Shown: positions 39,401 to 58,900 of the stretch, piece after piece
Numbering within the stretch: the first letter of the stretch is position 1
Layout: each line of letters opens with the position of its first letter
DNA from: Asterias rubens
Lineage: Eukaryota
DNA: 64,000 bases
Direction: 5' to 3'
Assembly: GCF_902459465.1 (NCBI RefSeq)
Contig: NC_047064.1
Span: forward strand, 21,204,001 to 21,268,000
Program-made: the position numbers and the translations under genes
Notes under the pieces: generated by a model
The model's input: the letters and a program-made list of their open reading frames with translations, nothing else
Told to the model about the DNA's origin: nothing
Database searches by the model: none

Positions 39401-41316
39401 TGTAGTTGCCATTTTTATTGAAATGATCTTATTATTATCTTCCATTGTTTTGTAAAGGCATCCCAGCCTACAAGCTTTGCTTTAATTGGCCATGCCTCCA
39501 TACAGTTTTCAGTCTTGTAACATCCTATCGCTTGTATTTGGTTTTTGTGTTTGTATGGAAATAAATGTTGATTGATTTGATTTGATTTGATTTGATTGAC
39601 AGGATCTTCAAGATGACATGTCCGATATGTTAGAACAAGCTGATGAGGTACAAGAGATCATGGGAAGAAGTTACGGTATGCCTGAGATGGACGAGGCCGA
39701 TCTAGAAGCAGGTATGTAACCCAAGAATGATGTTTTGAAGACTTTCTTTTGTTTGCCATCATCATAATCCTTCGTCCTTAGACGGAATAGTAGAAGCAGC
39801 TTTGATGAAGTGGTGCCAGGTTGCTTTATCCCTCATGAGTTGCTGGGTCTCGTTTGGATTGAGATTTGTGTCTCGGGTGATGGTGTCTGGGTAGCTCATT
39901 TTCCTCCTGCAGCGATTTGGATGTCCGCCAGGAGGATTCCAGAAGACCAGGTGTGATATTGGTTGATCCACTGTTCGCAAACAGTGACCAGCAAACTGAA
40001 GAAGTCTCTGCTTTATGGTTTTCGGAAAGTGGCGATAGATTTCCATATACCTCCCGGTTTGTAACATAGTCCCGCCAATGGATGTTTAGAACTCAATGCA
40101 GCAATTGAGTGTAGCAACCGTTTTTTGCCACAGAATTAGGAAAAGCGAGGGATAGCCAATAATTTTATTTAGGTCATTCAAATTGCTGACTGATTTACCT
40201 TTTGTATCATTGTGTCAGCACAAAAACGAGATAAGTATGTGCCGAAATCATTGGATGCATGGATCACTCTGGTCTGAGATGTTTTTGTAAAACTGAGATA
40301 CAAAATTTTTGAAATGACATTTTAGTACTGACATATAATTTCTAAGTTTCAAAAGACCCTGATTTGGTACAGATAATATTTGAAAGCAATTTTTTTGAAT
40401 TTATTTTTGGTAGAACTTGACGCTCTCGGTGATGACTTTTTAATGGATGAAGACACATCGTACCTGGATGAAGCTATCACTGCCCCATCGGCTCCAGAAA
40501 CAAATCCGGGTGCTGAATCAATACAGGTACGTCAATTTACTTAATTTATTTGTAACGAAAATCCTCCTCACGAAGTTGTGTGATTGTGGAGGATTGAGGA
40601 TTGTAGGCCCAACTAACAATTGCTCATCACTTGGCCAGGCATACCAATCTTATCCAAGTCCAAACCTTTAGGAGTTGAGTGACCATAGAGTGGAGGATAG
40701 TGGAGGATTGAGGACTGTAGGCCCAACTACTTATCACTGGGCCAGGCATACCAATCTTACCCAAGTCCAAACATATTGGTGCTGAGTGACCATACAGTGG
40801 GGGATTGAAGTCACTTGTAGGCAAGTGTGCCACATAAGTAGTTACATCATTTAGTGAGCAACTTACTTTTAAAAACTTGTAAATGCTTTACAAGAATGTT
40901 ACAGGCTTTTGAAAGTAAATTTGTTTTCATGTAACGTCTTGTTTGATTTGATGTGGATGATGTAAAGATAAAACATGATGTAGAAGGAATAGAATTCAAA
41001 TCTCTTCTTCTAGCCTAATATACAAGGATGTGGTTCCTCTGTTTTAAAAAAGAATTCCGGTTTTGTTTGCCCTAAAAAAAAGAAATTCTGAAAATAAGAA
41101 TACTTTCCTACAGGTGACCTCAATCCTCCAGATTGCAGAGCAGGATGCTCGCAAGTTTTTTGAGCTCGCATGCTCACGTGCTTTGTGCTCTGAGTTCAGT
41201 TTTTGGTGTTAACAGCCTATCACATCCCTGCATATATTTATTTAGAAATTTGTTTGTTTATTCAGGACGGCGTTCCTGTGGATGAGTTTGGTCTGCCACA
41301 GCTTCCATCTTCGTGA
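36435..41316 (+). CDS. CHMP5: Charged multivesicular body protein 5 (ESCRT-III, Snf7 family), 7 exons, 219 aa
   Basis: Exons: 36435-36503, 37430-37534, 38201-38247, 38526-38691, 39603-39711, 40414-40526, 41266-41316 (660 nt, GT-AG). Motifs: [66 protein letters not shown]. Confidence 0.96.
36855..37328. mobile_element. Non-autonomous hAT-like element with 8-bp TSD and subterminal repeats, in CHMP5 intron 1
   Basis: TSD GATAACAC at 36847-36854 and 37329-37336; TIR GGTCCTACTACTTGCCGTCAACTC; subterminal GCCGTCAACTC repeated about 4 times at each end. Confidence 0.8.
39125..39300 (+). mobile_element. Third SINE-like repeat in CHMP5 intron
   Basis: GTTCGAATCCC B box; the body TGTGGATTGGGTTTTCAGTCCCTACCT recurs at about 28110-28190. 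Confidence 0.55.
39762..40075 (-). mobile_element. 5'-truncated LINE (RTE-like) 3' end in CHMP5 intron 5
   Basis: Translation [13 protein letters not shown]...LVFWNPPGG...RDTNL...MRDKATW matches the post-RT C-terminal tail of RTE-type ORF2; followed by a (TGA)n tail. Confidence 0.75.
40575..40810. repeat. Tandem duplication, about 115 bp x2, CHMP5 intron 6
   Basis: GTGGAGGATTGAGGA(T/C)TGTAGGCCCAACTA...GAGTGACCATA(G/C)AGTGG appears twice. Confidence 0.85.
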
Positions 41317-45315: not shown

Positions 45316-46460
45316 ACACGAACAGCAGCCAAGCACAATAAAATGGTGCTAGAAAAAAGTTACCAGCCACAACAATGTGTCTCATGTACAATTTTATCCT
45401 GCTATTTTTTGCTAAGCAAGCAATTATTAGCAAATATTTACTTCTTAAGCAGCTCTATGAATTTTGGTCCTGGGCTGAATTTCACATGGCTACTTACCAC
45501 TGCGCTTACGACACCCTGTTAAGCATAAAGTCCATGGACTGTTAGCGCTGAACTATCCAGTAAGCATCGCATGAATTGGGCCCAGTTCCATTTCAATTTA
45601 CTGAGATTTAAAAGGTTGGTTGGCAAGGACATTTTAATAAGGTGCATGTTGAAGATAATACAAACGCATTTATGGAGCAGTACTTACACTGGGTATTGGC
45701 ACTTTACAAGAGAACAAAAAGATATTGCTTAGCAAATGTCACAAAAAGGTTGCATCTCGCCTGAAAATGCTCAATGTTTTGACATTGGTGGGAGTTCTGT
45801 TTTTATATGACCGATTTGCTGCAGCATGGAGGTATAACAAAGCAACATCCCACAAAAAACGTCAAAGTATTTTCATTTTGACGCACAACGGCAGAAGTTT
45901 GGCTTGTTTTTCAAAACCTTGAGGGTAGGGCCTAATATTACATTTAAAGGATAAACAAACAACAAATATTTGCTCAAGACGCTATTTAAAAACTAACATT
46001 CTGAAATAACCTACTTGCACGTTGTTCACTTATTTTGAAATGTTGTGTTAAAACCAACGAGTCCACTGAAACTGAGTCACTGACAAAATAATTAGTAATT
46101 ATATACAACAAATAAATACAAATATGGCGGCAAGGTGTTGTGCTTAACCCTTATTCAAGGGGTGAAGACATAATATCCCAAAACCTCTCATTAAAAAAAA
46201 AGAAATCATGAAAATAAGTTACCAAAATATACAATTGGCTGAGATGATTTCAGAGATTTCTGAGATGTTTCCTCAATGGCAAGACAAATCTTAAAGTACT
46301 GCTCTTCGTTTGTTTAATACTTGAGACTGATGTTTGAGATGTGCAAAATATGCAAAACGGTAAAATTCTTCTGTTGACCAATGATGAGAACTAGATATTT
46401 CAGGAAAATTCAAGTTGTTGAGGATTAAAACAAATTGATGTGCTATATGACAATCTTCCT

Positions 46461-46624
46461 GGGGTGGATTTCACAAAGAGTTAAGACTAGTCTTATCTCG
46501 AGTTAGGACGAGTTACTCAAGTTAGGACGAGTTACTCAGCCTAACTTAGGACTAGCCTTAAGTTTTTCATATCTCCTGGGATTAGTCCTAAGTTAGGACT
46601 AGTTTTAACTCTTTGTGAAATCAG
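46461..46624. mobile_element. Palindromic MITE family E copy
   Basis: Same TIR as 30894-31046. Confidence 0.75.
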
Positions 46625-47132
46625 CTCCTGTGAAAGCAGTTCACATGACTCGCTTGACGACGGGAGTCGCCCGTTTTTTCTTTACGCATGCAAAGAAAGT
46701 TGGAAGTTGGCACCCTCCTCCCTCATACCAATTAGGAGACCCACAGATAGCCGACCACATTCACAACTGCACCCCGACTCTCCCTCAACGGGCCGATTTG
46801 GACTGGAGTCTCGGATTCACCTTCAGGAAGATGGCTGACAAATGGTTGCCCTGATGAATGACAAGGGCAACAACTCGAAAGACGAAGAAGAAATAAAAGT
46901 CAACCCAAAACCAATGGGGACTTTTGGAGCGCGAGTTGGCAGCAGACTTACCGGGTAAATCCATTGTGTTTTGGTTTCCTTTTTAACTGCACTGTAAATT
47001 AATGCACTTGCTCTCGTCCCGTCAATTTTGCTCATGTAATTGAGTCAGTACTTGGAGGAAGGAAGAAGAAGAACTACCCACGCAAACAATGGAAATCTGT
47101 CTGCTGCCACCTAGAGTTACAAGGTCTCGCAC

Positions 47133-50100
47133 TCAATGGTGTCTTTCCTGTTGGCATCCTGCTATACTGTACTTTCTCATAATGTCCGACACGAACTCAA
47201 AGCGCTTGACACGGTTTCGGAGTCGGTAGAGAGGGTCCAATAAAAACCGAGATTTGGCTGAACTCTCCTGGTGAGGAACGTGAATGGCCCACACGCTGGG
47301 TAACACAACAAACTCATACCTGTGTAAATAAACAAATCAAGTTTAGGAATTACTAACTGTTTATTGTAAGAATTTGTCTTAGCTTGACCATGGAGGAAGG
47401 AAGCGACGGAGTTCGAACGACCCGCCAAACCGCAGAGTAACAAAAGAAAACCCGGACAATGCCCCTTATCAGGAAATGTACACACTGTTGAAAAAAAACT
47501 TTGGTAGTGAGAGTAGCAAGAATCCAAATCAAAGTTCATTGTGATATCGGATAGCTTCTTACCCTCTAGCATGGAGTTCCATGGAATATGTCACTTTGTT
47601 CATTCCGTATCCTGTAAATCGCTCATCAAATGTCTGCACATCAACTGTGTTTCTGCATCAAGAAACAATCAAACAAATTGTGATGTTAATCTGACAGCCA
47701 GGGTACAGCAATTCAAGAAAAAATTACAACATCAGACATCTGTGTTCAGGCTGGTGACCGAGAATTTATTGTCGCTGGCTCTCGGTGATGTAATTAAATT
47801 CCTACTCCTGTTTGAAATTCAGCTGGTCTCTTTCCCCAGGAACTGGACACTATTGGTAATTACTCCAAACAATTATTGTTATCATAAAAACTTACTTAGT
47901 AACAAGCAATTACCTCTACATGTGACATGACCTAAAGTCCTGTTCATACATCCTGCGAATTTGAATGCGATATGAATGTTGACATAAAAAATTCGCAATG
48001 AAAAATTTGCATCAGTTGAAATGTTCTATACTCCTACGAAACATTCCAAATGAAAACAAGACTGTGACGTCAAAAATCGTAGGAACCAGGCTTAAGGTTA
48101 TCATAACTTACTTCATTATGAGATATGGTTCATATTTATCTTGATATTTGATGACCCTATAGGGTTGAGTAGAGGAGTACCAAGCCCTGTAGTCCGTGGG
48201 TCGGTGAGCTTCTGGAGCAGTGGACAGCAGTAAGGAGGAATTAAGGAAAACAATTTGACAAGAACACACAAAAAAGTACAGCCTCTTTAAGATGCTTAGC
48301 AAGAAAACCAGACTCACGCAGCCTCTTTAAGAACCCAGAGTGGCTCAGCAGAAGATGGTGCTACCAAGTTATTTTGCTAAGCTCATAAATAGCAGGGAAC
48401 CAGTTACACAGAATACAGATGGAATGAGAATTTAGCTGGTAACCAGCTTTTTTAACATCAAACTTGTCAAAAGAAAAATACAATTTACTTGTTAAGCATT
48501 CCTGGTTGAAAAAAAGTCTTTAATTTTAATATAACAATCATTTCAAGTTACAAATCATGAAAAAGGATATTAAAAGGAGAAATAACGGCATCTTGGCCAA
48601 ACATGCGATCCTTCAGATCCTGCTTGGTTTTTGGATGATTGGACGGAGAATCCTAAAAGAGAAAAAAGACAAATTCATTATTCTCAAATCAAGAAACTAT
48701 CGCTACAGCTGTCAAGTAGATGTCAAATTGCAACATCTCCTTTGCTCCAGGGGCCGATTTCACAAAGAGTTAACACTCATCTTATCTCAAGTTAGGACGA
48801 GTAACTCAACTTAACTTAAGACGAATCCTAACGTAGGATCAATCTTACGACTAGGACTTGTCCTAAATCCTAGAATCGATCCTTAGTTAGGAAGTGTTTT
48901 ATGACATCGACCCCTTGGTCCCTTTCCCGCAAACCCAGAACTTCAAATAAGACTTCCTTGTATACCTTGATAACCTCTTGTGAATATTCAAAGACTGGAA
49001 CTACAAATGCTGTCTGGTCCATCGAGGGCTGTTTTTCCATCTGGTCTAAAGAGGACTGGAAGCTTGTCTGAAACTCAGGGGACGGAACGAAATCTGCATC
49101 CAAGAGCAGAATGTACTTGGACTTGGCTTGCCTAGAAAGAAAAAAAAAGTTATTGCCTCAGATAAAAATCTAAACCTTTGTTGAAGTAGTGATGTGATGT
49201 ACAATGACTGGCTTTTATTTAATCAATTTTGAATTGAATAAAAGAAAACTGACAAGAGCAGGATTTGAACGTGTGATCTCCAGATTAACATGCCGGTGCT
49301 CAACAACTGAGCTATCTAGCCCTATGTTGGCAGTCTCTCTATTTTGTCAATATCTTTGTTCAGGGGTGCCAGTCAGACGCCATACAATCGTTAGCTGCCA
49401 TAAACTGTAGTTTGTTTGTTTTTTAAATGAGGAAAGTGCCACAAACTACAAGACTTTATAAGTGTTTTTTTATATTTTTAATAGCACTGCAGGGAAACCA
49501 ACAACAAGGAAATCATCTACATGTAAACACCTGGGCCCAATTTCATAGAGCTGCTAAGCACAAAAATTTGCTTAGCATGAAATTTCTTTCTTGATAAAAA
49601 CAGGATTACCAACCAAATTTCCACGTGATTTTCAGGATAAGCAAACAACAGCTGAATACCAGTAACAAGCAAAATGCAACAAAAAGAAATTTGGTTGGTA
49701 ATCCTGTTTTTATCAAGGAAGAAATTTCATGCTAAGCAAGTTTTTGTGTTTAGCAGCTCTATGAAACTGGGCCATGAACCATTCCATGCCTAACCTACTG
49801 AGCTACATTGTTTGTCCCTTAAGGGGCTTTTTTCATGAGAAATAAGTCACAAGTTATCGCCACAACGATTTGAATATCTGCGTAAATTTGTTTGAGACTT
49901 TTTAAAGATTATTACCTAATCGCCAAATTCCTCAAATAGTTGACAGGATAGTCATCCTCAACCTGAAATGAAAAAACAAAAACAGAAATAAAGTAAAAGT
50001 TACAAATTACGATGTAGCTCCTCCTTCTCCACTTTTACAGGAAAGGTTTTAAATATTTTGACTGTTGTGCCAAGAGTCGCATCACTTTTGCTGAAAGAGC

Positions 50101-53100
50101 CTTCTCGGTATATGGACCCAAACTCTGGAATAAACTTCCAAATCACATCAGAGACACAACATCCTTCGACACATTCAAGACACTTCTGAAAGCCCACTTG
50201 AGCAAACCTTTGATTTAGGAGCTTTATAAATTATTTATGATTGATTGGTTGATTGGTTGATTGACTCACTGTTTTGGCAAAGACTACCACCATGTTGCAT
50301 CTACCATGAAGATGGCTATCTTTTAACTTCTTCTTGATGTACAACCTGAATAATACAAAAAAAATCAACTCTTGAATTCGGAAAAAGAAAAAACAGCGAA
50401 AAATCATGACAATCTGATTAATGAACGATAAAAAACTAATCCCAGAAGTGCATCCCTCTAGCCAAACTGAAACCTTAGAGCATCATCAACAGTTTTACGA
50501 AAATCAGACAACATGAGGTAACAAAATACCCTTCTCAAACGACACTCACCGTTTCCAACTATGGTCTTCATCAGGCTGGAGTGATTTCGTTGGAACGTAG
50601 AGAGCGATAGAGATGGGTCCCTGCCAATCCCTGAGAGTAGATTCTATGAGGTCTATTCTATTGAGAGAAACTTGAGTCACGAGGGTTACTGGAAAGGACT
50701 CCTCATCAGCCTGTAGAACGAACAAACAAGTCATTTTTGTATCTTAAAGACAGTTCTTTTCAGAACTGAGAAGTCTCCTGAATTCCAAAAAATCTACACA
50801 GCGGTAGTAGAGAAGTCTTTCAAATTCCAAAAAATCTACTCCGCGGTAGTAGAATATATAGCAAGACAGTTCTCTAAAGAACAAAATCTACTTGGAAAGA
50901 AGACACACACATGGTGTTAATGATGCCAAAATGCTGTTCTTGAGTCCTTCATGTCCTTTTGACATTTCAAGTAAAAAACATATTTAAAAAAATTATTTGC
51001 AAGATTAACTTTTTTTCTCTCACAAATTTAAACAAATAGTCCAAGCAGGTTTGTGATGTGTATGTAGATGCAAAAGGTGGCTCATGAATATTCAATACTA
51101 ACATTTGCATAATGATGATGTCATATATTTATAGAGTCATCATTATTCAGCTAAGACCAAAACACTGGAGAACATCCTCTATAGTTTCTTATCTTTCTTA
51201 AGGATTTGCAGATCTGACTTTTTCTAGACATAGTAGCTCATGAATATGCAATACTTACTTTTGTCTCTACTGTTAGAAACTGTTCTACTTCAAACGGTGG
51301 GCGAGTCACAGTCGTAACCGGATGGAAATATTGCGGACACGGCTTCAGGAAGTTCCTGGGGAGTAGAACTTGATGACCATGGCCTAAAAATTTAAAAGAA
51401 ATCTCAAGACAATTTTTAAATCAATCAAAATATCACAGGACAAACTTTTCAAGTGCAATTTTGTTTTTACTTTTTTTTTGTCATTTGTAAGAATCAGTAA
51501 AAAAGCATAATTTTGGTTATGAATGAATTTACCTGTAGCTGGTCGCACTGTGACGTCCATAAATTTGATGGATCCTTGGTAACCATGGCAACATAGCATG
51601 ATAGTTATACTTTGAAGGACTTTATCTGTTGGGATGACCTGCCAATGAAAACCACCAAAAAGTCATAAAGTTTTAAAAGGTTTTAAAAAATTGCTAGTTT
51701 TAAAGCACTGTCCTTTATTTCCTCTGAAAAATAAAAGTATAGATTATTGAGAACAAATATAGACTGCACTGTTCCTGCCATCCTTGTGGTGAGTCTTACC
51801 TTGTCTACTTTGGCCGATAAATATGGGTGTGTCCCGGCAGGAAAATCAAGTCTGTAAAATAAAATGTATCAGTTGTTCTGAATGGTTTATACCTAAAAGT
51901 AAAAAAAAATAGCAAGACATTTTCGCGTTTACCATTCCTATGAAAGGCTTCCAAGTTTAGCACATTAGATAGCAAAGTTCCTTGAAACATTACAGCAACA
52001 AACAAAAGATCCTCAAATTCCCCAAATATATTTGAATTTGCTCCAGACTTTCATGAACTATGGTGTGATCAAGCTTCTGTTCTGTTAGCACAGAATTTGT
52101 TTTTTTAATGAGATGTCACCAACATCACAAATCCAGATGGCCGCTTCAAGGCGAGGGCTACAGTTAATCGATATGAGCTGTTGACCAAATTAACTGTCAC
52201 CAGGGGCACTTTCCACCTACTCTTTGAGCTGAAACAGGGATACCCCCTTCACAGTCCGTAAGGATGTAAGCATGTGTAGCATCCACAAGGAGCCTGGCTG
52301 GTAGAGCAGAATGCACTACCTTCCCAACTTTTTAGGAAGAATTTATGGACTGGTGCCTTGCTCAAGAGCAAGGGCTTAGAACCCAAACTCTACAACACAA
52401 AAGCCTGGGCTTGGAGAACTAGACTGCTCAGCCACAACACGCCACAGCAATGGGTTCACAGCCAAAACCCCTTATAATGCATATAATCTGTGACTGGTTC
52501 CTTGCTAGTTTTTAATTAGCAGATAATTTTTGCTTAGCAGTGTTTCCTGCTTAGCAGTTTTTTTAAGGCGGGTTAAGTTCTGTACATTGAAAGTCTCACC
52601 TCATTCTGTTAGTTGATTCATCGCTGTATTTGAGTAATGCTATTGCACTGTAGGTTGCATCGTCAGACTACCACAGAGGAAAAGAGAAGTGTGGAGATTA
52701 GAGGAGGTGTTATTAAGAAATCTTGGCTAATAGTTAACCCTCCTACTAATGGTAATATTATTTCCAGTGATCATGGGTCATGTGGGGTGGAACAGCTGTG
52801 TGTACAGATCTGACTGTTTTTTTGTAATGTGTAGATGCATTCACCACATGGTATTATATTGCAGGCTTGCATGGTCTATCTATCATTCAAAACCACAGTG
52901 GATAATAATGAATGGTCAGAAAGTAGGAGGGTTAACTGTGTACTGTGTAGATGCATTCAACAAATGGTATCATATTGTAGGCTGGCATAGATCTGTATTG
53001 CATCATTCATAACCACAGTGGATGATAATGAATGGTCAGACAGTAAGAGGGTTGACTGTGTATTATGTTGATGCATAACAACAAAATTACAGGCCGACAT

Positions 53101-55781
53101 TAGTTTAACTATTTTTCAAAACAACAGTGGATGATATTAAATGGTCAAAAACTTTGGTCTAGAATGCCCCCCAGTTTTGAAAACCCCTGGGTTCTAGATC
53201 CCTGGAAGGTAGTTTTAAACTGTTCTGCTAAAAAAAGAAAACAATTATCTCACCATTTGTTTGTCCTTAGTCAACTTGGATGATGCACTTTTTGCATGAA
53301 AGTATATACTTTTTATTGATATATCTGGATTAATCTGCAGGGGGAAAATCAAGCATTAGTGACTTTTTTATTCCAAACATTCTTACTTTGTCCAGAAAAT
53401 ACCTCTCAATACACGGTGAACACTAATAGAGTATTTCATACATGTATGTTAATTGTGGCATCAGGGATGAGAGTATACTTTGGACTTAACCCTCACACCA
53501 ATGTGTATTCAGAGCTCTGTGAAAAATTCCACAGGCAACAAATCACTCAGGTTGGATCTTTTTCACAGAACTCTGGAGATTATACAGTGCTCAATACACA
53601 TCGGTATTAGGGTGAAAACAACCTGTACAAGTAGAATATTCTTAATTCCAATAACGTAAAATAAATGTGATTTTAAATGTTTATGTTGTTTTAAATTGTA
53701 ATGAAAAGTATCAACCAGTTTCAACTATCATTTGAAGACAAAGTGTTCACACTCTCAAATCAAGCATAGTCCCTTCTTAGCCCAATATTTATTTTTGAAA
53801 TTGAACAAATATTTTGGTTTCAAATCTCAGTTTTAAAGCCATTGGACCCTTTCGGTAAACAGTGTTGTCCAAGGCCCACACTTTGTGTACCACAACTTCT
53901 ATATCAAATAACAAACCTGTGACAATTTAGGCTCAATCGGTCATCGGAGTCGGGAGAAAACAACGGAAAATCCCACCCTTGTTTCCGCGGTTTTAGCCGT
54001 GTCATGACATGTGTTGAATTCAAAATCAGTAATTCTCGTTAACGAGAATTTATATTGTTTTGCTGTTTTCTCAAAAAGTAAAGCATTTCATGGAATAATA
54101 TTTCAAGAGAAGTCTTTCACCATTGTCTTCTGTAAACCCTGTAAGTTATTTGTAAATCTGTGAACTTTTATTTTTTTTTCTGAACCGAAAGGGTCCAATG
54201 GCTTTAAGTAACTACTTTTGGTTTCTGGATGCTTGTATACTTACAGGTAAAAACTGATAAATAGCTCTAACACTGTCTGGCTTGCATTTCACACTCAAGA
54301 CCTGCACAAAGAGAATGATTGGACCAGAATAAAAGTCAGTAATGTGTCAACTATGTTTACAATAAGTGTGACCCAGGCAATATACGTACTCTCTGCAGAT
54401 CATATATGAAAGTTGACTTTTTGTGTCCTAATTTCCACATAAATCCAAGAGATATGAAAGTAAAAACTGGACAAGTTTTGAGATGTGCCCCCTTACATCA
54501 TATCAAAAAAATGATTAAAAATGGACAGTGCAATCTCCATAAAATATAAGATGTTATGTGTCTTCCATTAGGCTGTGTGCAAATCTTGCCTATAGGAAGT
54601 CCAGGCTTGGTGGCTCTTACTTATATTTACCTTTCCGCAGGTCCCCGGTTGGTCCGGTAGACTGCAGTCAATCTCTGGATTCCATCTGACCTGGGGCATC
54701 CACCAACCTCTGAGTTGAATATTGGACGAGTCAATGATTTGAGCTGAGATGAGGTTACTGGATGAGAATGGAAAATCATTGGGGTCTAGATTGACTTCTT
54801 GGTTTAGGAGCGCCTCGTCAATGCCGTCCACATCTGGGAAGTCTATATCTTGCTCTCTGACAGAATGAAAATTAAACACAAAAAATTATCTTTAATTATG
54901 TATTAATGATGATAAAAAATAGTGAGTATTTAATATTTATAATAAACCCAGGCCATAGCGCCTTTAACAAGATCAAAGCGCTTCATATGATATGACACAG
55001 AAACCTAGAACAAACAAAGTGAACAAGATGGTGCATTCATCGACATTATTTTTGGGAGCGTTCGTTTAGCTCCCCAGGGTCGACCCAGGCACGTGGCTGT
55101 TTTTTTTTACCAGGACGAACTTGGGTAATTATCTGCACACACTTTTCCTGGGAAAAAAAAACACACCGGGGTCATCCCAGGGAAGCTAAACGAATGCACC
55201 CATTTATAAAAAATAATAACAACATAAATGAATGGGGTCGTTGTAGGTAGTACTAGAAGTACTTGTGCTAGTAGGCCTCTATTGTATTGACTTAAAATTA
55301 AATTGTTTTAATGTATTGCTTGTTTTGTTTTGGTCATGTTGGTTTGCGTTGTTTTTAAAATTGGAAAAGTTTCCGTATGGCGCCACCACTTTTTCATTCG
55401 AAATAAAATAATATAGTGACTAATTTACCTGATTGATATATCCCTTTTTGTAAAAATGAGTGAAAAAGTGGTGTCGCCATATGGAAAGTTATCCTTAAAA
55501 TTAAATGTTTGTTTCTGTTTCTGTTTGTTTACTTTATATTTAATTTATAATTTTTATAAAAATACAAATACTTATAGAGAGCAGAAATATTGTCACACGT
55601 ACTTATCCCTTGTCCGTCCATCATCATCAAGATATACAACAAGGCTAATGTAAGTGATCATCAGCGAAACGATTGATATCAAGAAGAAGATCCATACGAA
55701 AAAAGCAATATTAAACAGACACAAACGATGTATGCATCGGCGCACTTTCCTTTGTAAATATCTGTGTATGCACGCAGCCAT
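47133..55781 (-). CDS. Type II membrane GT49-family glycosyltransferase (LARGE C-terminal domain/B4GAT1-like) with extra N-terminal lumenal domain, 16 exons, about 606 aa
   Basis: Exons: 55603-55781, 54631-54856, 54245-54301, 53254-53334, 52600-52667, 51800-51851, 51533-51638, 51259-51383, 50550-50710, 50270-50345, 49916-49962, 48966(or 48975)-49131, 48571-48652, 48112-48229, 47563-47652, 47133-47319. Phases are compatible throughout; intron 13 is AT-AC. A hydrophobic TM lies near the N-terminus. GT49 motifs: VTLVTQVSLNR, WQGPISIALYV, YPVNYLRNLAI, LLDADFVP (DxD), AFVVPVFE, HRPTDY, YEPYLI, FDERFTGYGMNKV, YEFVVLP. Confidence 0.88.
48230..48570 (-). other. U12-type (minor spliceosome) AT-AC intron
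   Basis: 5' end ATATCCTTTTT, branch site TTTTCCTTAAT (plus 48240-48250), 3' end CCTTAC 11 nt after the branch A. Splicing here gives the in-frame junction ...AVISPF-M-LSTAPEAHRPTDY. Confidence 0.9.
49532..49773. mobile_element. MITE family D full palindromic copy
   Basis: GGGCCCAATTTCATAGAGCTGCTAA...TTAGCAGCTCTATGAAACTGGGCC. Related copies at about 58433-58628 and 63857-64000. Confidence 0.8.
50050..50265 (+). mobile_element. L2/CR1-group LINE 3' fragment in GT49 intron
   Basis: Translation AERAFSVYGPKLWNKLPNHIRDTTSFDTFKTLLKAHL is the typical L2 ORF2 C-terminus; followed by a (TTGA/TTGG) tail. Confidence 0.75.
52790..53145. repeat. Tandem repeat, about 120 bp x3, GT49 intron
   Basis: GTAGATGCATTCA...ACAGTGGAT(A/G)ATAATGAATGGTCA is repeated. 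Confidence 0.8.
53833..54207 (+). mobile_element. MITE family B full copy
   Basis: TTAA|AGCCATTGGACCCTTTCGG...CCGAAAGGGTCCAATGGCT|TTAA. Confidence 0.85.
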
Positions 55782-55884
55782 CTTGTTTCAGAAAGTTATA
55801 TCGCCCTCTTGTGTGGAGAAAAATTATTACAGACGTGGGTAGGGACGGTCCGCCGCCCACCACAAACAGAGGGCAGTGTTCAAA
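55782..55884. promoter_or_regulatory. Compact bidirectional promoter/5' UTRs between the GT49 ATG and the divergent ATG
   Basis: 103 bp between the start codons; GC box-like CCGCCCAC; YY1/Kozak-like AAGATGGC and AAAATGGC at the two starts. Confidence 0.5.
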
Positions 55885-55953
55885 ATGGCAGATTTCAGTC
55901 GAAAGTCGAAATCAAGTCTCCTATCAAAAAATCTCACAAGAACGAAGGAAAAG
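55885..55953 (+). CDS. Probable first coding exon of a gene divergent from the GT49 gene; weakly resembles the amphiphysin/BIN N-BAR N-terminus
   Basis: caaaATGG start context, 23 codons MADFSRKSKSSLLSKNLTRTKEK, phase-0 donor AAG|GTCAGT. As recalled, the amphiphysin first exon (MADIKTGIFAKNVQKRLNRAQEK) has the same length and a similar end. No amphiphysin-like exon 2 was found in the window. Confidence 0.45.
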
Positions 55954-58900
55954 GTCAGTAAAATTCAATATAATTGTTTCTCATTAGCAGGATTGTTTCC
56001 CTACACGATGGCTGAGTAAATGTTGACATAGTGGTATTTATGACACTCAATTAGTAAGGTTTATTAGTGGACCTGTTGAGAAGAAAAAGAGAAAGTCATT
56101 GATTGGTGCAGTCTATGCCGCTATGCGTTCATGCATTGCCCCAGTGCTGTGGTCTAGGCTAAGCAGGACGTTCAGTGTTCACAAATGCTGACTTTGGTTA
56201 GTATGGGGCACTCGGGTTGTAACTTTTCGCTGTATTAAAACTTAATTTGTCCTGGAATTGGCTGAGGTTGACATTTAATGTTTGATTACTGACTGTCCCC
56301 ACACAACATTATTCCTCTCAAAAAAACCAAAAAAAAGGTGAAAATCCAACCAAACTTGATTGATTGACAGATATTGAAGCATTCTTAAATTACAGTTTTA
56401 ATAATTACAGAATTATTGGAAAACTTTATCCTGCCACCACTTTCTCACAAATTTTACCAACTAGGAATACCTCATGTTACTATTTTTTCATAACGAATGA
56501 AAAAGTGGTGGCAGGATGATGCGGAAACTTTTCTAGATTATCTCCAATCTTTCTTTGAATGGAAAAGTTTGCGTATGGTGCCACCACTTTTTTATTCGAT
56601 ATGAAATAATATAGTTTCTAGATTATCTCATGTGACATACCTTTTTGTAAAAATGAGTGAAAAAGTGATGGCGCCATACGGAGAGAATATCCCTTTGAAT
56701 TGCTCCGCTGTCAGAAAGAAGTACATGAAGCGCTATACTTGGAAGAAGAAGAAGAAGCATAGCAACATACAAGACTATAGTGCAGCGAATTATGTGTCTT
56801 TGAATATAGATGTGAAGTCAAAAAAGATTAGATTATCAAATTGTTGAAAGATACAATTTTACAAAGGCTGGGGATACTTTACTGGCGACATTAAAATCAT
56901 TTTAAACTGTATTGGCTGGCACTGTTCAAACTGCCGTCAAAACAATGTCTCGGAATTTTTTCACAATTGCGGGTAAAATAGCCACTACCATAATCAAACC
57001 ATTAAAATTAATCCCAAGTCACCTTGGTCCGAAATCAACTCTTCCAGGGTCAGCTTGAGGCAAAGCTCTGGTTATTGTCAGCAACAGACTATCGGTTTGA
57101 ATCCCGGTCATGACGGCACTACATCATAATCGTTTCATAAAACGTTTGGAAGTAGTGCATTCTGGTCCATAACCCAGGCTTCTAGTGGATGATACATTGT
57201 ACCCATCCCTACATCCTTACAGACTGTGAAGGGGGTAACTCTTTTTCAGCCCAAGGAGTAGGTGGCAACGTGCCCCCTTCGGCAGTTGATTTGGTTCGGC
57301 AGACCAAATCAGTTACATGTAAGTGTAGCGCTCAACATGAAGTGGCCGTCTGGTATTGTATTGTTAGGTGATATCTCATGGAGAGAACAAAAATAATAAT
57401 AAAAATAATAAAAATTCTCTTAGAGCAAGACACTTTTATCTAAACTTCTCAGTAGCTGAAAGTTTCTTCTTGTTAACTTACAGCATGTCATGTCCATGTA
57501 TTTTTTTATTTGAAGCAAAAGTACTCGGACAATAAAGCATCCAGAGAACATATCAAGTGCTGCAAGTTTGTTTCAATCATGGTGTTGTGGACCCAATTTC
57601 AAGGAAACTGGTTAATATAAGAATCAAGGAAATAAATTGTGGTCACTCATGTTGGTCGCTCAGTTTCCTGATAGTAAAATTTAAGCCCAGTGAAAGTAAA
57701 ACAAAACATGTATACATTTCAAAAACTTTGTTTTCTTCATCAAAATATGTATACACAAAATCAAATCGGAAAAAGATTTACAAAGAAATTAGTACTTTGT
57801 GATCAGTTGTCTTAAATTCTTTACATGTTCAAATTGTGTCAGATCTTAATAAGTTTTGTCCATGAACTTTGTGCGGACAAGTTATTATGCGGAAGGAACA
57901 CAGTACACTGCATGGATTTATTAATTACCAAACTAACTTGTCCTTGCTTTCTTGCTTTTGTTTACAAGGACAATTTCATACAGATCCAACCTTCAAACCA
58001 GCCTGAAAGAGGTGTTTTTACTGATAGTGACTGGATTCATATTTAAATCCTTCCTTTTTAACAGGAAAATACACCTCTATGTAGAGGATTCATCATGTAA
58101 TATGAATTGTAGATAAAACAAACACAGTCTCTATTTTCACTCACACCACTGGGCCATTTCCTGGAAATCTACTGCATGCTCAGGTTATTCATTTACATTT
58201 CAAATACAAGTCCCATACAAATGACCGAGATGAACCAGTCACAAAGCTCAGGACCAGTGAAACAAAAAGTGAACTGTTCCCCTGGAAAGTTACATTTTTG
58301 TATATCGGTCAAACACCCAGGAAAGGAAAATACTGTTATTGATCCAAGGATGAACACAATCATCTTTGACAGATAAGATCCTTGACAGATAAGCTTGTCT
58401 CCTAAAACATGCACAATTCATGTTCAAACATTAGGGTCAAATTTCATAAAGCCTGTGAGCATAAAAATTGCTACTTAGCACAGAAAATATTGCTAAACAG
58501 AAATTGGTTACCACCTAAAATTCCATAAAATTTTCATTGTTGCAACTAGTGCCCCACTCATTATATGCTTTGCAGAAGAAATTTTCTTAGCAGTATTTCC
58601 TGCTTAACGGCTTTGTAAAATTGGGCCCAGGGTATAGTGTATTTACTGTATTAAAAAAAACAAAATAAATTATTCAACTTTATTAATATTTTGTTTGTGG
58701 AATGTTCAACATTTTCAGTAACCTCATTGATTGGATCTTTCTAAATCATTGTTATACAACTGTGGCCATGTGGATTTTTTATTTTTATGAAAATCCCAGC
58801 TCAAGTTCACACAGTGATTGGTAAAAAGGATTCTTATCAAATTAATCTTTGTCAGTAAATATTGATTCTTTGATTCACATTCCTGTATCTGTGACCTGAC

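Follow-up and report, generated by a model that had tools for sequence, protein, structure and literature searches.

Does a gene for a GT49 glycosyltransferase in the starfish Asterias rubens carry, inside its catalytic domain, an intron that runs from AT to AC and belongs to the U12-dependent class? An earlier note had placed such an intron at positions 48230-48570, within a GT49 domain, of the 64-kb window (the whole stretch of genomic DNA analysed here). We found that sequence signals, reading frame and RNA contigs agree with this proposal. Intron 13 of LOC117288231 is very probably a genuine U12-dependent AT-AC intron of ancient origin, an ordinary minor intron that is already present in the public gene model; its dependence on the minor spliceosome is predicted from sequence rules.

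Structure of LOC117288231 and signals of intron 13

The coding region of LOC117288231 (47133..55781, minus strand; exact spliced model) consists of 16 coding exons and specifies a type II membrane protein whose GT49 domain is C-terminal. The spliced model that uses the AT-AC junction translates exactly to XP_033624892.1 (P0001; 606 aa). A phmmer search with exon 9 as a query returned the same entry at 100% identity, under the name ‘uncharacterized protein LOC117288231 [Asterias rubens]’. The exact model also bears out the number 13 that the earlier note had given to the exon preceding the intron. Fourteen introns of the gene are of GT-AG type and have unremarkable donors and pyrimidine tracts, which leaves intron 13 as the sole AT-AC intron. 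In the protein, an N-terminal membrane anchor and a stem of ∼300 aa precede a single GT49 domain (PF13896; 170.6 bits versus a cut-off of 27), which is the only Pfam domain found in P0001; a GT8 xylosyltransferase domain (PF01501) is absent. The exon pieces are matched collinearly by the PF13896 profile, with intron 13 falling between profile positions ∼206 and 207 and exon 14 accounting for positions 207-250. The DxD motif is kept (LLLDADF, aligned with LSDIDF of LARGE1), and enzyme activity is predicted. The orthologue from Asterias amurensis (P0041) has the same peptide at the junction.

Coding exon 13 (48571..48652, minus strand; 82 nt, DSPSNHPKTKQDLKDRMFGQDAVISPF plus 1 nt) ends with ...GAT GCC GTT ATT TCT CCT TTT A, the last base being 48571. 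The sequence ATATCCTTTTT (48570-48560), the start of the intron and a match to [AG]TATCCTT, directly abuts this exon end. Intron 13 itself (48230..48570, minus strand) is 341 nt long and lies in phase 1. Its 5′ splice site, ATATCCTTT (48562..48570), followed by TT, is a perfect U12 consensus, as judged from the sequence and from complementarity to snRNAs. The branch-point sequence TTTTCCTTAAT (48240..48250) includes TCCTTAAT, an 8/8 match to the branch box TCCTTRAY, and the likely branch adenosine is 48241 or 48242. The 3′ end of the intron, ...TTCCTCCTTAC (...CCTTAC), is reached at 48230, with the terminal dinucleotide AC at 48230..48231. Counted from a branch adenosine at 48241 the distance is 11 nt, inside the range of ∼10-15 nt (rarely >25 nt) used as a criterion for U12-type introns. 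Coding exon 14 (48112..48229, minus strand; 118 nt) reads (M)LSTAPEAHRPTDY...EPYLIMK, and a GTAAGT donor comes next. When 48571 is joined to 48229, the in-frame sequence DAVISPF-M-LSTAPEAHRPTDYRAWY (...ISPF-M-LSTAPE..., with LSTAPEAHRPTDY after M) results. All three frames of the intron are interrupted by stops.

We searched both strands of the window for the complete U12 architecture, defined as [AG]TATCCTT, then TCCTTRAY no more than 5 kb further on, then AC or AG 6-16 nt later. It was found once, at intron 13; the 5′ splice site ATATCCTTT alone occurs twice in the 64 kb. An Rfam scan of 46000-56500 detected no structured RNA in the intron.

The argument that exon 13 has no usable in-frame GT donor did not hold as it was worded, as 23 in-frame GT/GC-AG combinations can be formed mechanically near the exon ends. 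A narrower form of it stands: the ctccag acceptor has no in-frame GT donor partner and is in frame with two GC sites only. We rejected the 23 combinations; they use weak sites, have no support from RNA contigs and add or remove residues in comparison with the alignment of homologues.

The junction in assembled RNA records

Contigs of four runs from four studies were placed on positions 46500-51000; one run (X1) carries one species label and three runs (X2, X4 and X5) carry another. These are assembled contigs presumed to be RNA, the type of run being a guess, and strand, expression level and minor isoforms cannot be read from them. Each run produced one long record split into the pieces 46xxx-47316, 48112-48229, 48965-49130 and 50548-50710, with the numbers of record letters between the pieces fixed at 93, 81 and 122. 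These numbers are readily translated into exons. The 81 letters represent exon 13 (82 nt) less its first G; this letter was attached to 48965, where the preceding GT donor has its own G. Exon 15 (90 nt) and an additional GTA make up the 93 letters, and the 122 letters correspond to exons 10 and 11 (76 + 47 nt) with a similar ambiguity at the ends. The layout of the contigs is then 46939-47316, the 90-nt exon, 48112-48229, the 82-nt exon, 48966-49130 and, further upstream in the gene, 50550-50710. For the letters between the listed pieces we also considered an exon at 50207-50086 or at 50207-50132, which would require a non-canonical AT..AG intron; the canonical 76-nt exon at 50345-50270 was chosen, in agreement with bin depth and with the protein.

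In all four runs (X1, X2, X4 and X5) the exon 14 piece stops exactly at 48229, next to the AC acceptor and not at the AG at 48216-48217. The 48571 side of the junction, and with it exon 13, was deduced from the letter counts (81 + 1 unlisted letters) and from depth arithmetic rather than read directly. In bin 48463-48613 the depth was 4.3 in X4 (15.1 × 43/151) and 1.7 in X5 (5.96 × 43/151); therefore, the records there cover 48571-48613 alone. In bin 48161-48311 the depths of 8.35 in X2 and 2.72 in X5 equal 69 covered bases (48161-48229). For each of the two bins, depth thus agrees to the second decimal with exon-only coverage in two runs out of four. In the mid-intron bin 48312-48462 we saw depths of 0 in X5 and 0.16 in X1, with 21.3 in X2 and 11.3 in X4, where unspliced RNA or a repeat is possible. 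The minus-strand junction of 48571 with 48229 that had been predicted from the sequence is in use, according to the contigs of the four runs and the exact match to the RefSeq protein.

Components of the minor spliceosome and class of the intron

The A. rubens assembly (417.6 Mb) contains one match each to U12 (126 bits), U6atac (124 bits), U11 (92 bits) and U4atac (90 bits) snRNAs, all above the Rfam cut-offs. The 5′ end of U11, AAAAAGGG, is complementary to ATATCCTTT (CCTTTTT of the 5′ site). The U6atac sequence AAGGAGAG (within ...GAAAGGAGAGAAGG...) is complementary to the same 5′ splice site, and the U12 sequence GTAAGGAAAA (within ...GAGTAAGGAAAAT...) to the branch sequence TTTTCCTTA(A)T. 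A survey by Larue and Roy (PMC10639083) found a vertebrate-like density of minor introns in Asterias rubens; hence intron 13 is one of several hundred minor introns in this species.

The minor-spliceosome pathway is established, and we infer that it applies to intron 13. The U11/U12 di-snRNP would bind the intron cooperatively, U11 pairing with ATATCCTTT and U12 pairing with TTTTCCTTAAT so that the branch adenosine is bulged. The U4atac/U6atac.U5 particle would then join, and U6atac would take the place of U11 on the 5′ splice site. Selection of the 3′ site would depend mainly on the short 11-nt distance from the branch, which is why an AC end would be allowed.

In comparison with the U12-type AT-AC class we saw no structural difference. 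The class has likewise the ATATCCTTT 5′ site, the TTCCTTAAY box, the 11-nt distance, the AC end and phase 1; U12-type introns likewise show deeply conserved positions, switching from AT-AC to GT-AG and conversion from U12 to U2 type where minor introns are lost. The practical value of this case is modest: the starfish gene model is confirmed, and knowledge of minor splicing is unchanged.

Conservation and fate of the intron in orthologues

We read the genomic loci of orthologues at the homologous codon. In addition to the starfish gene, nine intron-bearing orthologues from five phyla were available, and in all nine an intron is present at the same codon and in the same phase. In every case the intron lies behind base 1 of the codon that comes after (I/L/V/S/N/E)-(P/I)-(F/Y), and the alignment of homologous proteins is free of gaps over the junction. 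Eight of the nine introns are of U12 type.

The AT-AC subtype is seen in a crinoid, an acorn worm and two sponges. The crinoid Anneissia japonica has the 5′ site ATATCCTTAA, the branch sequence GACTTAAC and an AC end 12 nt after the branch adenosine; in the acorn worm Glandiceps talaboti these are ATATCCTTTT, TCCTTAAC and 15 nt. In the demosponge Dysidea avara, where the gene is present in three tandem copies, we found ATATCCTTTG, TCTTTAAC and AC after 13 nt, and in the calcareous sponge Sycon ciliatum ATATCCAC (ATATCC...), TCCTTAAC and AC after 22 nt. The amphioxus Branchiostoma belcheri combines ATATCCTTTC and TCCTTGAC with AT 10 nt after the branch adenosine, so that its intron appears to be of a U12 AT-AT kind. 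We infer this end from the continuity of the protein, as the RefSeq protein of B. floridae (P0050) reads ILPFRSVESPESH, in accordance with the prediction from an AT-AT join.

The U12 GT-AG subtype, with an AG end, is found in the sea urchin Diadema setosum (GTATCCTTTC, i.e. GTATCCTT; branch TCCTTGAC; 15 nt after the branch adenosine), in the brittle star Amphiura filiformis (GTATCCTTGA, again GTATCCTT; branch TCCTTGAC; 20 nt) and in the scorpion Centruroides vittatus (GTATCCTTTT, again GTATCCTT; branch TCCTTTAC; 12 nt). The spider mite Tetranychus urticae has a U2-type intron of 61 nt with GTAAGT at the start, CAG at the end and no branch box. The gene of the annelid Owenia fusiformis is a single exon without introns.

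According to these sequences, an intron was present at this codon before sponges and bilaterians diverged, most likely one of the AT-AC U12 type. On the simplest reading of its history, the metazoan ancestor had an AT-AC U12 intron that later changed subtype three times and class once, and that in one case was lost together with all other introns of the gene. The change to the U12 GT-AG subtype would have occurred in echinoids, in ophiuroids and in a scorpion, and conversion to U2 type in a spider mite; from the intronless annelid copy the intron would have disappeared. Subtype switch, class conversion and intron loss are known fates of minor introns. A single codon position thus displays retention, a change from AT-AC to GT-AG, conversion to U2 type and absence in an intronless copy.

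Relation to LARGE and B4GAT1

A PF13896 profile search of the assembly detected three GT49 loci only, all of them intron-bearing. In the starfish LARGE orthologue (contig C8, ∼17.30 Mb) the homologous position lies uninterrupted in one exon. In the starfish B4GAT1-like gene (contig C1, ∼15.96 Mb) profile positions 1-223 are in one exon, with no intron there. As neither paralogue has an intron at this position, intron 13 is a character of a third GT49 lineage. The earlier suggestion that the intron may be a marker of this subfamily is in line with these data, given that nine orthologues from five phyla keep the exact codon. The intron is a simple character that sets a little-studied third animal GT49 lineage apart from LARGE and B4GAT1.

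The closest solved relative of the LOC117288231 product is the glucuronyltransferase (GT49) domain of LARGE1/LARGE2 (PDB 7ZVJ and 7UI6; E-value 3e-40, residues 292-599). Motifs in common with LARGE include VTLVTQ, GPIS.ALY, YPVN.LRN, DxD (DAD versus DID), VP.FE, EPY and NKV. True LARGE matches are bifunctional and carry the GT8 domain PF01501, whereas the starfish protein lacks it, and in a phylogenetic tree the well-supported LARGE clade (98/98) leaves out P0001 and its orthologues; the group of P0001 is not a supported clade in this tree against two long-branch non-animal GT49 sequences. B4GAT1, a priming glucuronyltransferase, likewise combines one GT49 domain with an N-terminal membrane anchor that precedes it, but the N-terminal stem of the LOC117288231 protein (∼300 aa) is much longer. 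LOC117288231 is not the B4GAT1 orthologue; the separate B4GAT1-like gene on C1 has a different exon structure and is 28% identical to the LOC117288231 product.

No vertebrate member of this GT49 lineage was present among 31 matches of a word-limited search; thus the intron would not be expected in minor-intron lists centred on human and mouse. According to the earlier note, vertebrate LARGE and B4GAT1 are not known to contain a U12 intron, and weak indications are in line with this. A literature search returned no paper in which LARGE1, LARGE2 or B4GAT1 is linked to introns of the U12 or minor class, and in PMC8478517 there is no mention of GT49 or introns. LARGE1, LARGE2 and B4GAT1 are absent from those supplementary minor-intron lists of PMC6717393 that were examined; four of six positive-control genes are present in these lists and two are missing, which makes the absence a weak negative.

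Alternative explanations

An intron with AT-AC ends could belong to the rare class that is removed by the major spliceosome. The AT-AC ends alone do not define a class, and U2-dependent AT-AC introns are reported (PMC1557818). Introns of that kind, however, do not have ATATCCTT together with TCCTTAAY near the 3′ end, and both elements are perfect in intron 13; furthermore, the orthologues change to the second U12 subtype, GTATCCTT...AG, with the box kept. We consider a U2-dependent AT-AC intron highly improbable. We would give just as little credit to the splice being an artefact, i.e. to records that have a processed retrocopy in the DNA, or a mis-assembly, as their source, with RefSeq forcing the AT-AC join. 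It is true that the runs were designated as RNA by guess and that contigs rather than reads were placed. Still, the multi-exon structure is identical in four runs from four studies, and the PF13896 search of the assembly revealed no intron-less GT49 copy; as all three GT49 loci bear introns, the spliced records cannot be put down to a processed retrocopy. Against an artefact there is also the collinearity of homologous proteins over the junction and the conservation of the splice signals in nine other species.

The intron could also be real, as we hold it to be, and at the same time putatively be spliced slowly or retained, thereby limiting or regulating the output of the enzyme, as the earlier note had supposed. 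A subset of U12 introns is spliced more slowly in human cells according to PMC4066798, and in X2 and X4 the depth of contigs over the intron is comparable to the depth over exons. The intron depth in X2 and X4 stops short of the 3′ end of the intron, as bin 48161-48311 of X2 has exon-only coverage. On the other hand, the mid-intron bin 48312-48462 has zero depth in X5 and 0.16 in X1, contigs cannot measure retention, and the generality of slow splicing is itself called into question in PMC4066798. Slow splicing or retention with an effect on enzyme output thus seems to us unlikely. Slightly more doubtful still is the broader proposal that the conserved AT-AC intron is a putative splicing bottleneck that tunes the output of a GT49 enzyme apparently absent from vertebrates; if true, it would explain the retention of the U12 type from sponges to deuterostomes.

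Public gene models at the intron position

It had been anticipated that gene predictors restricted to GT-AG introns would mis-model the gene at this site. With respect to Asterias the expectation failed: XP_033624892.1 already contains ISPFMLSTAPE, i.e. the AT-AC junction, and therefore the predictor did not mis-model the starfish gene. It was borne out in Glandiceps and in Branchiostoma belcheri, and probably also in Saccoglossus. In the Glandiceps model C plus ATATCCTT is translated as ‘HIL’ and the reading continues into the intron; in the B. belcheri model the exon is skipped. The Saccoglossus protein likewise has ‘HIL’, with a deletion after it, and this model, known to us from the protein alone, is probably wrong at the position of intron 13. 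The public proteins of Glandiceps, B. belcheri and probably Saccoglossus have spurious or missing residues within the catalytic domain.

Fate of the U12 intron in other lineages

At the position and in the phase of the AT-AC U12 intron of LOC117288231 (intron 13, minus strand, 48570-48230), the homologous locus of Tetranychus urticae (L017) carries a 61-nt U2-type intron, GTAAGT...CAG (2160-2220), which is likely to represent a U12-to-U2 conversion. The minor introns of this spider mite have presumably been lost. Tetranychus urticae is listed in the species key of PMC10639083. The annelid homologue, from Owenia fusiformis (L007, 2001-3713), is an intronless copy, one unbroken ORF of 570 codons, and sits on a long branch of the tree. 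In the sponge Dysidea avara (L012) exons of the GT49 gene were found in three tandem copies (at ∼13.5, 35 and 74-79 kb), and in all three the orthologous 5′ splice site retains ATATCCTTTGG.

Protein models at the intron position

Public models of orthologues are erroneous at the U12 intron in Glandiceps talaboti and Branchiostoma belcheri, and probably in Saccoglossus as well. In the Glandiceps model (L008, 11549-12616) C+ATATCCTT was translated as ‘HIL’, after which the model runs on into the intron; the same ‘HIL’ is present, at the protein level, in the Saccoglossus protein (P0005). The exon ending in ...DDANILPF is missing from the B. belcheri protein model.

Contig depth and repeats

Assembled contigs from four runs, presumed to be RNA, were placed on the window between 46500 and 51000. 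Within the U12 intron (48312-48570) we observed a contig depth of 21.3 in run X2 and 11.3 in run X4, with the 3′ end of the intron not reached; there was none in X5 and almost none in X1. The depth seen in X2 and X4 could come from unspliced RNA or from a repeat.

By far the highest depth in all four runs was found in the bins of an inverted repeat in intron 11 (49534-49773; arms of 88 nt, 95% complementary, with a 64-nt loop), and for this reason we characterized it as an abundant MITE-like repeat family. Also in intron 11, a tRNA-like Rfam match (49250-49321, minus strand, 36.6 bits), at which ARAGORN called no tRNA, falls in a high-depth bin and is probably a tRNA-derived SINE. High-depth bins contain both copies (83-87% identical) of a further interspersed repeat as well, one at 46457-46630 in the 3′ flank/UTR region and the other at 48746-48831 in intron 12. 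Elsewhere in the window, a 101-aa ORF (39762-40067, minus strand) encodes a product that may resemble the C-terminal region of a protein of retrotransposon origin.

Starfish paralogues

GT49 profile position 223 is an exon end in both the starfish LARGE orthologue (G000:C8:17301040-17303960) and the B4GAT1-like gene (G000:C1:15958111-15993702), whereas LOC117288231 has no intron at this position.
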